Source of the DNA: Hyaloraphidium curvatum SAG 235-1
Taxonomy: Eukaryota; Fungi; Monoblepharomycota
DNA length: 64,000 nt
Direction: 5' to 3'
Assembly: GCA_025558095.1 (NCBI GenBank)
Contig: JAIVFI010000043.1
Coordinates: 379,877-443,876, forward strand
This document shows positions 31,991 to 52,016 of this stretch, piece after piece; position 1 is the stretch's first letter, and each line of letters opens with the position of its first letter. The notes under the pieces were generated by a model. It made no database searches. It had not been told where the DNA came from and saw only the letters and a list, made by a program, of their open reading frames with translations. The translations under genes were made by a program, and so were the position numbers.

Positions 31991-33466
31991 ATGGCCCCCG
32001 CGCCGGACGCGCCGCTCACCTTCTCGCCGCGGGAATGGCTGGCCCTGTTCCCCGCGGCTCCCCCGAGGAATACGGGCGCGTGTGCCGTGCCGGGCGCCCC
32101 GCCGGCGGACCCGGCCGGGGCGCTGCGTGCTTCGGAGCCGCTGACGCGCGAGGCGCTGCTGGCGGCACTCTCGCCGTCGCCGCTGCTGGCGGGGATGACG
32201 CGCGCGCAGCTCTCCCTGGCGCGATGGGCCGTCCAACGGATTCGCCTGCGGTACTACCTGCTCACGCTGTCGGGCGCCATGCTCCTCGCTGTTGTGTGGC
32301 CGGCCAACGCGGCGCTGGGCAGGTTCACGCCCGGCCAGCTCGGCGTCGGCACCGCTGTTGTTCTTACCAATACGAGCGTGTCCCTCGTGAGCCTGCTTTT
32401 CATTTTCCGGGGTATTGGCGCCCGGTTCGCCTCCCCTGTGGACCTTTCGACGCACCCGCTGGCCGTCTTTGCGCGCTGGGCGCAGCTGTGCTCCGCTGGG
32501 GATCCCGGGGGCACGCTCTCCCCGCTTGTGGCCCACGCAGCTGAAGACTCGCTGTGCCCGTGCTCAGATTGCTCCAGGGACTTGCTCGCCCGTGCGGGCG
32601 CGCTGCGTGTCGCCGAGTTCGTGGCCCGCTTTTCCGCAGCCGCATTCTGGCACTTCGTGTTCCACGCGTGGATGCCTGCCATAACCCTGGGCGCCTACAC
32701 CTGGGCGACGCCGTGGGCCGCCGTCCTCTGCTGCATTTACTTTGCAATCAGTGTCGAGTTCCACGTGACCATGCTGGTCGCCGCGTCGCCCTCCAACATC
32801 GCCGCGCTTCAGCTCTCTCTGCGTCTGCACAACCGAGCCGCGGGGCTTGCGCTGAGTGACATGCTGGGCAGGTACGACCGGCTGCTCCTGGACGCCGCCA
32901 GCATCCCGGGTGACCCACGGGCGCCGGCTTCGGAGCCATACGCCCTGCTGCACGACGGCATCGCGGGCACGTGGCGACGCCGGATCAGCTCCCTCAACTC
33001 GGGCGCGACGGTCGTCTTCGCCTTCGGCATCATTATCGCCGGCACTTTCGTTGTAGGCCTCGCCTCGGGCAACTGCGTCCTCGGCCCCACCCTCTTCCTC
33101 CTCCTCTACACCGTCCTCCTGATCGCAATGGACCTCGCCAACTTCGCCGCCGCCAACTCGCACCCCTCCGCCATCGTCGCGCTCTACGCATCCGCGCGCA
33201 CCTCCCTCCTCCGCATGGGCTGCGCCGCCGCCGCCTCGGCCGCCCCCCCACCCGCGCACGCGAGGGAGCTCGCGGCGGCGCAGGACAGGCTGCTGGGCGC
33301 ATACGTCGCCACCGCGCCGTCCTTCTTCGCGTCGTTCATGGGGTTCCGGGTCAGCGCGGCGGTGTTGCGCAACGCGGCGGCGACGGCGTTCACGCTGGGG
33401 GTCGGGCTGTGGAGCGTGCTCAAGGGGGCCGGGGTGGGGTTCACGATGAACACGACGTGCGGGTGA
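31991..33466 (+). CDS. 7-TM membrane protein of unknown family (candidate GRL/DUF3537-like), intronless
   Basis: Seven hydrophobic segments, CPCSDC in first long loop, C-terminal FMGFRVSAAVLRN..LWSVLKG. Confidence 0.8.
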   Translation: MAPAPDAPLTFSPREWLALFPAAPPRNTGACAVPGAPPADPAGALRASEPLTREALLAALSPSPLLAGMTRAQLSLARWAVQRIRLRYYLLTLSGAMLLAVVWPANAALGRFTPGQLGVGTAVVLTNTSVSLVSLLFIFRGIGARFASPVDLSTHPLAVFARWAQLCSAGDPGGTLSPLVAHAAEDSLCPCSDCSRDLLARAGALRVAEFVARFSAAAFWHFVFHAWMPAITLGAYTWATPWAAVLCCIYFAISVEFHVTMLVAASPSNIAALQLSLRLHNRAAGLALSDMLGRYDRLLLDAASIPGDPRAPASEPYALLHDGIAGTWRRRISSLNSGATVVFAFGIIIAGTFVVGLASGNCVLGPTLFLLLYTVLLIAMDLANFAAANSHPSAIVALYASARTSLLRMGCAAAASAAPPPAHARELAAAQDRLLGAYVATAPSFFASFMGFRVSAAVLRNAAATAFTLGVGLWSVLKGAGVGFTMNTTCG

Positions 33467-33583: not shown

Positions 33584-34998
33584 TCACGAGTCCGAGACGG
33601 AGCTGATGACCCCGCCGGAGCACGAGAAGGACGACACCTGGGTGCTGCTCCCCGCGCCCGCGAACGCCGGGTTGGACCACTGCGGCGCAAAAGTCAGCCC
33701 CGTCCTCCCGCGCATCGGCGGGCGACCCACCCCAAAGTACACCCATCCGTTGAACTGCTGGTTGTTGCACGTGACATACAGCCTGAGCAGCCTCCCCCTC
33801 AGCGATGCCTGGAACCACGTCGGGGCGTGCGTCGAGCCCTGCGCCTCGGTGTTGCAGTTGCGCCGCTGCAGCACGTCCACGCCCTGCCGCGTGGCGTAAA
33901 AGTTCATCTCCGGTGCCTGCGACGAGTACTGAGAGGGCTGGCCCGCGGGGACGGTGTACAGGGAGGTGATCGGGGAGCTGGCGAACTGGTTGGTGTTGTT
34001 GTTCCAGATCTGGAACATGCCGTTGGAGTTGCAGGCCTGCCAGTTGTTGCCCGGGCTCATGGCGGTGCCGTTGGCAAAGGCAAGGTTGGCGATCGGGGTG
34101 TCGCAGCCGGTGCCGGAGAGGAAGGGGATGACGCGGGAGGGGGACGAGCCGGTCGGGACGGCGACGAAGCTCGGGCATTCGCGGCCGATAAGGGCCTGCC
34201 GGATGGGATCGGAGGCGGGGGCCGCGGCGGTCGTGGTGGTGGGGACGGGGGTCGTCGTGGTACGGGCCGCCGTGGTCGTGGAAGGTGCCGCCGTCGATGT
34301 GCGCACATCCGGGGACGGGAGCGGCGGGGGCGGAGGGGGCGAAGGTGGGGATGGCGGCGGCGGGGCGACCCCGGCAGGGAGGCAGCGGCACTGGAATGGC
34401 GACGGCTGGTCAGCTTTCGAGCTGCCTATGGAGGCAATCGGTGTCTCACGTTGCCGGACGAGTAATCCGGGTAGAACCCGCCGACCTGGCGCCGCAGCAG
34501 CACGTGGCGCTTGCTTCCCGCGTCGCCGTGCGGCTCGACCTCGACGTAGTACCGCGAAGTGCCGCCCTCCTGGTCGGCGAACACGCCGTGCTCGTCGGCG
34601 CCGGCGGGGGAGACGGAGATGTCGGGCAGCGCGGACCACGCGTTGCGGTAGTCGACGCAGAAGCGCACGCCGTCTGCGGTCTCGCCGGGCGCCAGGCTGC
34701 GGGTGCCCTCCACCAAAATGGAGGCGCCCTCTGCGGAGAAGGCGGCCCCGGAGGAGGACGAGAGGGCGGCGCCGTCCAGCTTGAGGCTGCCGCGCCACAC
34801 GCCGGCGACCATCCCGGCGGGGTTCGTCACGCGCAGCTCGGCGCACTGCCGCCACCGCGAGCCCGGCGCCGGCGTCGGCCCGGAGGTCTTGACGATCTCC
34901 ACCGCGGCCGGCCAGCTCGGCGACGCCGCGCCGGCATCGCCCGCCGCCGCGGCACACAGCAGGGCGAGCAGCGCCGCGCACGATGTGCGCTGCGGCAT
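33584..34998 (-). CDS. Secreted protein: CBM2-like N-terminal domain, Pro/Thr linker, unknown C-terminal domain shared with 49500-52016
   Basis: Signal peptide; CAELRVTN..W..SLAPGET..VRFC resembles CBM2; one intron near 34391-34449; LQRRNCNTEAQGSTHAP motif. Confidence 0.75.
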
Positions 34999-49499: not shown

Positions 49500-52016
49500 A
49501 TGCGATCTTTTGCCACCTTGTCCGCCGCGGCTGCCGCGCTGGCCCTCGCGGCGCTGCTCGCCTGTGCGGGCGTCCCCCTCGCGGCCGCCGGCCCCGTGCG
49601 CCGGCAGCTGACGCCGGACTGGGCCGCCGATCTCTCCGCCGGTTCCGCCGCGGCACGCCAGCTGCCCGCCGCGCCCTCGGCCGCCTCGACGCCGTGCGCG
49701 GCGCTGCCCGTCGCGGCGGACTGGCGGTGCGGCCCGGACTTTGGCGCGCGCTGCCCCGACGGCCTGTGCTGCTCGCGCTTCGGCTGGTGCCAGGACAACG
49801 GCGGCGATTCCGATCCTCGGTGGTGCGGCGACGGCTGCCAGCTCGGGTACGGCAAGTGCCTGTTCCCGGCGGGCTCCCCCGTCCCGGACGCCGTGTGCCC
49901 GACCGCCTCGGCAAGGGCGCCGCCGACCACCGTGTCGGCCTCGACGACGGTTTACGCAGCCTGCACCACGGTCCCCGAGGCGGCGGACGGCCGCTGCGGG
50001 GCCGAGTTTGGCCGGCGGTGCCCGGACGGCCTGTGCTGCTCCCAGTTTGGGTACTGTCAAGGTGCGTTGGACCCCTCCCGGCCGATGATCTGCGAGCTCA
50101 CCGGCATGATCTTCCAGACGACGGCAGCGACTCCGGGGCAGCCTGGTGCGGCGACGGCTGCCAGCTCGGCTTCGGCAAATGCTTCCTGCGCCCCGCCCCG
50201 CCCCGCTTCTCCTGCCCCACGCCGCGGCCCGACCCCACGCCGACCTACCAGCTGACCACCATGTCGTCGTCGACGCCGGTCTACATGGCGTGCCCGGATC
50301 TGCCCGTGACCGAGGACGTGCGCTGCGGACCCCAGGCCGGCAGGCGCTGCCCCGGCAACCTGTGCTGCTCGCAGTGGGGATTCTGCCAAGGTGCGTCGCC
50401 GCTCCGCCCCGTGCATCTGCCTGCCTGCTCATCTTCTGCTGCATGCTGCAGACGACGGCGGCGACTCTGGCGAGCCCTGGTGCGGCGCCGGTTGCGAGCT
50501 CGGCTGGGGCAAGTGCTTCCTCGGTACCGCGCCCTTTGCCTCGGATTTCGCATGCCCCACGCCGACCTCGGACGGCCCGCCGCCGACGTACCAGCTCACC
50601 TACGTGTCGGCCGCGACGCCCGTGTACATGGCCTGCCCGACGCTGGCGGTATCGACCGACGGGCGGTGCGGGGAGGGGTTTGGGACGAGGTGCAGGGACG
50701 GGTACTGCTGTTCGCAGTGGGGATGGTGGGTAAATGCACCGCCGGGCTACCCAGCATCCGCTGACTTTGCTTTTGCCGGCTTCAGGTGCCAGGACAATGG
50801 GGGCGACTCGGGCTACTCGTGGTGCGGCGAGGGATGCCAGCTCGGCTTCGGCAAGTGCTTCGTCGGGTCGGCGCCGCTCTCGACCGCCTTTTCGTGTTCG
50901 GCGAGTCCCACGGCGGTGCCCGAGACTGGCGTGCCGACGCCCCCGCCCGCTTCGACCTCGGAGGTAACACCGACGAGCACGGCCGCACTGCCGACCACCG
51001 AGACCTCGGCAACCGCTGCCTCGACCACGGTCGCACAGCCAACTACAACCGCCACCCCCGCGCCGTACGTCGGCCTGCGCATGACGGCCGACTGCCCCTC
51101 GGGCACCTTCCGCGTGCGCAACGGCAACGCCTTCTCTGTGCCCTACAGATGGGACGTCTTTGGCGGCTCCCTGAACGGCAGCGGCGTCGCGGCACCCGGC
51201 ACGACGATGGGCGCGATCGACGTGCGCCCGCTGACTGGGGTCACGGTGCGGCTGTTCGTGAACGGGACGGTGCTGCAGGATACCAAGGCTCAGAAGCCGG
51301 CGTCGGACTGCCCCGCGGATACCACGGCTGCGGGGCCGACCAACACCGGGGCGGCATCGACAATCGTGCCGCCGGCCACGTCTTCCGTCACTCGTCCGGC
51401 CAGCACAACCGCTCAGCAGCCGGGAACGACGACGCGAACGACAGCCACCTCCACGCCCGTCGACACGATCCGCCAGGCCCTCACCTCGCAGACCCTGCCG
51501 TGCCCGGCCTTCTCCCTCGGCTCCGGCCTGTCGACGAACCCCATGTTCCCCTTCATCAGCAACCTCGCCTGCGACTCACCCCTCGCCACCCTGCGCTTCT
51601 GGAACGCCACCGCGTTCCCCCTCAACTTCGGCGGCTGCAACTCCCAGGGCCGCTTCGACGTGCTCGCCTTGAACGGCACCTTCGTCCCCGCCCCCGACCG
51701 CTCGCAGATCGCCTTCCCCGCGGGCGTCGACCCCTCCGCCCCGCAGCTGGACATGGACTTTTACGTCACGGGTACCTCCCTGCAGCGCCGCAACTGCGGC
51801 ACCGAAGCGCAGGGCAGCACCCAGGCGCCGTCGTTCTACGCCTCCGCGCTCCGGGGGCGTGTGCTCCGGCTGCAGGTCTCGTGCGCAAACGGGGCCTACG
51901 CGGGCCCGCTGTACTTTGCCTGGTCGGACCCGCAGTACTACGGAAGGCAGAACTCGACGATGGTGCAGCTGTTCAACTGCCTGGGCGGAAAGGTGGCCGG
52001 GGTCACCACGCCGTGA
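49500..52016 (+). CDS. Secreted protein: 4x CBM18 (hevein-like chitin-binding), small beta domain and unknown C-terminal domain
   Basis: Four RCG..FG..CP...CCS..GWC..WCG.GCQ.G.GKC repeats; introns 50062-50117, 50391-50451, 50726-50785; P/T linkers; LQRRNCGTEAQGSTQAP. Confidence 0.85.

Follow-up and report, generated by a model that had tools for sequence, protein, structure and literature searches.

A six-cysteine, predicted beta-sandwich domain of modular secreted proteins in Hyaloraphidium curvatum: a probable accessory module rather than a new catalytic CAZyme

A domain of modular secreted proteins in Hyaloraphidium curvatum, here called domain X, is probably a secreted, disulfide-braced, non-catalytic accessory module that likely binds a cell-wall or extracellular polymer. 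This reading is drawn from the occurrence of the domain at either protein terminus, its four kinds of partner, one of which is a complete enzyme, a conservation limited to the scaffold, and a predicted beta-sandwich structure. From its six cysteines, we infer three disulfides. As far as sequence searches extend, the domain is specific to the Hyaloraphidium lineage. The host is a little-studied fungus that lacks flagella and belongs with the allies of the Monoblepharidomycetes (PMC6899921), and its genome was taken into a survey of early-diverging fungi (PMC9457484). We analyzed a stretch of 64,000 nucleotides (C43:379877-443876, hereafter the window) of its assembly, which has a total length of 31.9 Mb and a G+C content of approximately 68%.

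Two copies of domain X are encoded in the window, copy A (33584-34210, - strand) in the 3' part of KAI9002210.1 (P0002) and copy B (51462-52016, + strand) at the 3' end of DFJ74DRAFT_714365 (P0001, 779 aa); the features of both genes are shown in Table 1. In BLASTP, the two copies aligned over their whole length with 81/208 identities (39%, E 4e-39), and six Cys residues are common to both copies and to the entire domain X family. The similarity that an earlier note had described from the sequence, with its listed motifs and six shared Cys, was thus borne out, as was the fusion of the domain to differing carbohydrate-binding modules, CBM2-like in gene A and CBM18 in gene B. Copy B was described as standing behind four CBM18 modules, and these are indeed present, but an additional 86-aa module intervenes, so that the order in gene B is signal peptide, four CBM18, Thr-rich linker, 86-aa module, linker, and domain X. 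The 86-aa module has a single paralog in the genome (C40:475020-475280, - strand, 61% identity), which lies just downstream of a CBM2-like N-terminal module, suggesting that the 86-aa module has also been shuffled.

Table 1. Positions in the window of the features of the two genes that encode domain X
Feature	Position	Strand	Remarks
Gene A exon 1	34450-34998	-	ATG at 34998; signal peptide, CBM2-like beta-sandwich, and low-confidence tail with L-x-[KR]-R-Q
Gene A signal peptide	34924-34998	-	Within exon 1
Gene A CBM2-like beta-sandwich	~34600-34923	-	Within exon 1
Gene A 59-nt intron	34391-34449	-	GTGAGA..CTGAC..CAG; skipped in RNA contig
Gene A exon 2	33731-34390	-	C-R-C motif, linker, and first 160 residues of domain X
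Gene A exon 2, C-R-C motif, then Pro/Thr-rich linker	34211-34390	-	
Gene A exon 2, first 160 residues of domain X	33731-34210	-	Cys 1-5; RLLRL-x-V-x-C-N-N motif
Gene A in-frame 51-nt intron inside domain X	33680-33730	-	GTGGGT..CTGAC..CAG; skipped in RNA contig
Gene A exon 3, last 31 residues of domain X	33587-33679	-	W-S-x-P ... C-S-G-G; RNA contig piece 33400-33679
Gene A stop codon	33584-33586	-	
Gene B exons 1-3	~49500-50060, 50117-50389, 50451-50726	+	
Gene B exon 4	50787-52013	+	Four exons in total
Gene B 5' part, signal peptide and four CBM18 (hevein-type chitin-binding)	49500-50900	+	PF00187, E 1.1e-13; spans all four exons
Gene B 86-aa module of unknown type	51057-51314	+	Between two Thr-rich linkers
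Domain X copy B, 184 aa, uninterrupted	51462-52013	+	Query of the structure model; B residues 596-779
Gene B stop codon	52014-52016	+	

The RNA evidence for gene A consists of one 2347-nt minus-strand contig from the single public run in which this stretch occurs. This contig omits exactly 51 nt and 59 nt of the gene, both with GT..AG ends (CT..AC on the + strand), indicating that gene A is transcribed and that both introns are spliced. Because the 51-nt intron is removed, the copy A domain comprises 191 aa and not 208 codons. The public gene model KAI9002210.1 reads through this intron, which adds 17 spurious residues, and we therefore corrected the model for intron retention, from 451 to 434 aa. 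In the BLAST alignment of the two copies, a 17-residue gap in copy B coincides exactly with this intron. Further support for it comes from introns at the same position of domain X in the C32 paralog and in the environmental orthologue P0003 (L008), whose gene call also ran into the equivalent intron. P0003, the gene A orthologue on an environmental contig, has kept the whole architecture together with the intron position; when the environmental contigs were compared with the window by tblastx, they were collinear over gene A only, with no flanking synteny. The spliced exons of copy A and of the C32 paralog entered the alignments as separate rows, with the exons left unjoined in all searches and fold predictions. 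A GTGAGT sequence that overlaps the stop codon of copy A was considered as a splice donor and rejected, because the convergent ORF ends 118 nt away, no further minus-strand ORF is present, and the RNA contig is unspliced there. The contig reaches approximately 130 nt beyond 33400 (region 33271-33466), where it overlaps the 3' end of a convergent + strand gene (ORF end 33466), suggesting either overlapping 3' UTRs or transcripts merged during assembly.

When a profile of the domain X paralogs was searched with HMMER against 1.84 billion representative proteins, 12 matches were obtained: five from H. curvatum, five from environmental Logan or IMG assemblies (P0003, P0004, P0005, P0009, and P0011), and two from bacteria. 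The bacterial proteins are repetitive and were aligned through short repeats alone; they were taken as spurious, which leaves about ten true members. No other named fungus was found to carry the domain in this search, and a word-indexed search of 5.8 billion proteins with the copy B domain recovered nothing beyond the query proteins.

An HMM scan of the H. curvatum genome revealed eight domain X loci with four architectures, in which the domain is located at either protein terminus. Besides gene A (CBM2-like module followed by X) and gene B, the paralogs C8 and C32 have X directly behind the signal peptide and then CBM18 arrays; C18:587k (L006), C5 (P0007, L027), and C42 (L028) have a C-terminal X joined to a vanadium-haloperoxidase-like protein of the PAP2 superfamily; and C18:160k (P0010, L024) combines a divergent X with a Ser/Thr stalk and another Cys domain, as does the environmental protein P0011 (L009). 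Residues 1-440 of P0007 were most closely related, among PDB entries, to the Zobellia vanadium iodoperoxidase 4cit (E 6e-29), and they also matched chloroperoxidase chains of the 1vnc type (E ~1e-14); the match to 4cit indicates that the haloperoxidase-like partner is complete without X. In these three paralogs, domain X would tether the vanadium-haloperoxidase-like enzyme to whatever ligand X binds. A signal peptide was seen by eye in A, B, C8, C32, P0004, P0007, and P0010, the members whose N-terminus was read, the P0007 (C5) sequence at that end being signal-peptide-like. The annotated protein KAI9028044.1 (P0006; C8:792k, L003) starts at an internal Met within domain X, and this annotation appears to be 5'-truncated, because the upstream open frame holds a signal peptide and approximately the first 100 residues of X. 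The C-terminal domain of P0010 and P0011 is conserved and contains Cys (...GNLLD.F..G.F.Y.V.SKNVP.RTM...GSW.QLRGC.WK...GYIPMV), and it has no recorded Pfam assignment.

The repeated recruitment of domain X to differing partners, at both termini, suggests that it brings a function to the proteins that carry it. It is very improbable, in our judgement, that X is an inert structural or stalk element, or a fast-evolving lineage-specific secreted domain with no specific ligand. Such a reading would agree with the small size and lineage restriction of the family and with a conservation that is nearly all structural (Cys and hydrophobic core); however, eight paralogs and their environmental relatives retain the domain at 22-60% identity with loops that are conserved within clades, and copy A is expressed.

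The statement that the domain is unrecognised and recurrent also stood, since neither Pfam, nor PDB sequences, nor predicted structure yielded a confident match. Pfam-A searched at E up to 1 gave nothing for A, B, or any of the 15 alignment members, scans of the whole proteins likewise left X without a family, and a profile search of PDB sequences gave only a chance match (E 1.2). AlphaFold2, run on a 15-row alignment with copy B as the query, produced a model with a pLDDT of 76.5 and a pTM of 0.76 (four of the five models were above 71), in which X forms a single beta domain of eleven strands and two short helices, a generic beta-sandwich. This single predicted domain, linked by Pro/Thr-rich segments to CBM18 or CBM2-like modules, is a discrete module in the sense that applies to CBMs in general. 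In a Foldseek search of the PDB, the model matched nothing at E <= 0.001, and the best entries were Fab and p53 cores with a TM of approximately 0.3; a second-look VIA run agreed with this outcome. A shape search of the ESM Atlas retrieved fn3-like and other accessory domains at TM <= 0.43.

The best structural matches, namely cadherin EC, RET cadherin-like, Ig V, and pilus/S-layer domains, could be read to mean that X is an Ig/cadherin-like module for protein-protein interaction, adhesion, or oligomerisation that joins secreted or wall proteins, and one clade bears X on a Ser/Thr-rich mucin-like stalk in the manner of an adhesin head. We consider this reading rather unlikely, because the matches are weak (Z <= 5.1, TM <= 0.43) and generic for beta-sandwiches, and most of the modules joined to X bind carbohydrates. 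Furthermore, a conserved Ca-binding acidic motif of the cadherin type is not expected in X, in which no Asp or Glu residue is invariant.

Searches with language-model features yielded leads of the lectin type only, ricin/AbfB for copy A (0.82) and PA14/GLEYA for copy B (0.89, 150 shared features), both of which lie below the reliability bars. The two leads disagree with each other, and identities of X as a ricin-type beta-trefoil or a PA14/GLEYA domain were rejected as having neither Pfam support (E up to 1, 15 members) nor fold support: there was no match to PF07691 or PF10528, and both PA14/GLEYA and ricin were absent from the top 50 structural matches. A lytic polysaccharide monooxygenase (AA9-AA17) was also rejected for domain X. 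Such enzymes begin, at the signal-peptide cleavage site, with the His1 of the histidine brace, but most copies of X, namely A, B, and those of the three haloperoxidase fusions, are found at the C-terminus, and no His is invariant in the family.

The earlier note had proposed that X has a catalytic or wall-loosening action on chitin or cellulose, as a candidate new CAZyme family, with the Glu and Arg of an invariant RRNCxTEAQGS motif as a likely functional site. In its full form, this reading has the CBMs direct X to its substrate and the two residues form the active site. The layout of CBM, linker, and terminal domain does match that of many polysaccharide-active enzymes, and genes A and B encode no other candidate catalytic domain; proteins made of CBMs and X alone leave room for X as the "business end." In B numbering, the positions that are invariant or nearly so in the family as a whole are Cys 14, 37, 59, 112, 141, and 173; Pro 15 and 30; the aromatic residues Phe17, Phe65, Trp/Phe74, Phe100, Tyr151, Phe152, and Trp154; and Leu135, Arg136, Leu137, and Gly148. 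Asp, Glu, and His provide no invariant position, either family-wide or in the seven-member core clade (A, B, C8, C32, and P0003-5). The invariant polar residues of this clade are Arg4, Asn48, which belongs to an N-x-[ST] sequon, Tyr101, Arg109, Asn111, Arg136, Tyr151, and Ser155. Some lyases use Arg or Tyr chemistry, and in a catalytic reading, the invariance of Arg109, Arg136, Tyr101, and Tyr151 in the core clade would count in its favor, as would the strong conservation of the loop in A, B, the C32 copy, and P0003.

This loop reads TE[AL][QE]GST in A, B, C32, and P0003, SSDR-AGE in C8, SGSQ-TGS in P0004, and R----GNG in P0005, whereas it is deleted in the haloperoxidase fusions and unrelated in P0009-11. 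The invariance claimed for RRNCxTEAQGS is therefore confined to A, B, and two further members, and the Glu/Arg site that had been proposed falls within a loop prone to indels. Its Glu is missing from C8, from P0004 and P0005, which are 50-55% identical to copy B, from all haloperoxidase-fused copies, and from the divergent clade. Because the loop varies in both length and content, RRNCxTEAQGS cannot be a family-wide catalytic site. Pfam, PDB profile, and structure searches all gave no match to a GH, CE, PL, AA, or expansin family, and the structure search recovered for X none of the catalytic folds, such as those of a TIM barrel, a DPBB, or a jelly-roll lyase. A match to a known GH, AA, CE, or expansin family is what the earlier note had named as evidence against its proposal, and on that point its expectation of novelty held. 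The idea of a catalytic or wall-loosening X nevertheless lacks support on other grounds: no Asp, Glu, or His is available as an invariant catalytic residue, and X is appended to complete haloperoxidase-like enzymes in three paralogs and occurs at either terminus. In chytrids, CBM18 proteins that lack a catalytic domain form an accepted "lectin-like" class (PMC3569864), and the existence of this class means that A and B need no catalytic end. These results leave the "new CAZyme" reading without support, and we consider catalysis by X to be very unlikely.

The conserved loop RRNCxTE[AL][QE]GSTxAP of A, B, C32, and P0003 could, to judge by its conservation, be a site whose function, of whatever kind, is specific to that clade. 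With low confidence, we also put forward a more specific possibility, that X is the first representative of a new family, carbohydrate-binding or wall-modifying, that is confined to the Hyaloraphidium/monoblepharid lineage, in which the loop of these four members recognises a non-chitin wall polymer or loosens it non-hydrolytically. A loop acting on such a polymer would explain why X is paired with binders of chitin and crystalline polysaccharides.

The N-terminal module of gene A had been called CBM2-like, and this assignment holds for the fold but not for the sequence. The core of its AF2 model (residues 1-108) has a pLDDT > 90, and its best structural matches in Foldseek are CBM2-type chitin-binding domains of Streptomyces and Thermococcus/Pyrococcus chitinases (probability 1.00, TMt 0.55-0.60, E ~5e-3), whereas Pfam found no match to CBM_2 (PF00553) in the module or in 11 of its paralogs; the call therefore stands at the fold level only. 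A word-indexed search of 5.8 billion proteins with this module likewise returned only the query proteins. The H. curvatum genome contains at least 14 further matches to it (paralogs L011-L019 among them). In the copies with a readable N-terminus, the module lies directly behind the signal peptide, with a conserved L-x-[KR]-R-Q dibasic motif (kexin-like by eye) after it and differing C-terminal domains beyond. The module may be a pro-domain that is cleaved off, or it may serve in targeting. CBM2 occurs essentially in bacteria and archaea, and a fold-level CBM2-like family in a fungus is a by-product of this analysis.

Overall, H. curvatum has a toolkit of shuffled secreted modules that comprises domain X, the CBM2-like N-terminal module, CBM18, and the 86-aa module. 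Another by-product is a set of secreted vanadium-haloperoxidase-like enzymes that bear domain X as a candidate targeting module. If X is an accessory binding module, as we favor, the products of genes A and B may act as multivalent coat or cross-linking proteins of a chitin-containing wall. If binding is true, X would represent a new family of the CBM type, from an early-diverging fungus on which there is hardly any work, could be used to probe for a polymer of the wall or the environment, and would provide a handle on wall building in chytrid-grade fungi.

Fungi commonly have secreted domains that are rich in Cys and specific to one lineage. As a protein family, domain X is unrecorded and lineage-restricted, whereas as an add-on beta-sandwich of modular secreted fungal proteins, it is familiar. 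It differs from CBM families in having no sequence similarity and no confident structural similarity to them, and with its six Cys, it is larger and richer in Cys than most CBMs. The N-terminal module of gene A, for its part, differs from CBM2 in that, in the copies with a readable N-terminus, it is located directly behind the signal peptide and is then followed by the conserved dibasic motif. The beta-sandwiches nearest to X are of the cadherin EC, Ig-like, and fn3-like types (8tri_A, 7cym_B, and 2x2u_A), together with the SusE-like BT4661 (4ak1_A). PA14/GLEYA domains and ricin-type trefoils, which were the nearest feature clusters, resemble X in being sugar-binding add-on domains of similar size. 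Proteins A and B have in common with the lectin-like CBM18 proteins (PMC3569864) that no catalytic domain is recognisable in them. X resembles CBMs in being a discrete module, a predicted beta-sandwich of 170-190 aa, that is joined through Pro/Thr linkers to CBM18, to a CBM2-like module, or to an enzyme, occurs at either terminus, and is found in shuffled architectures.
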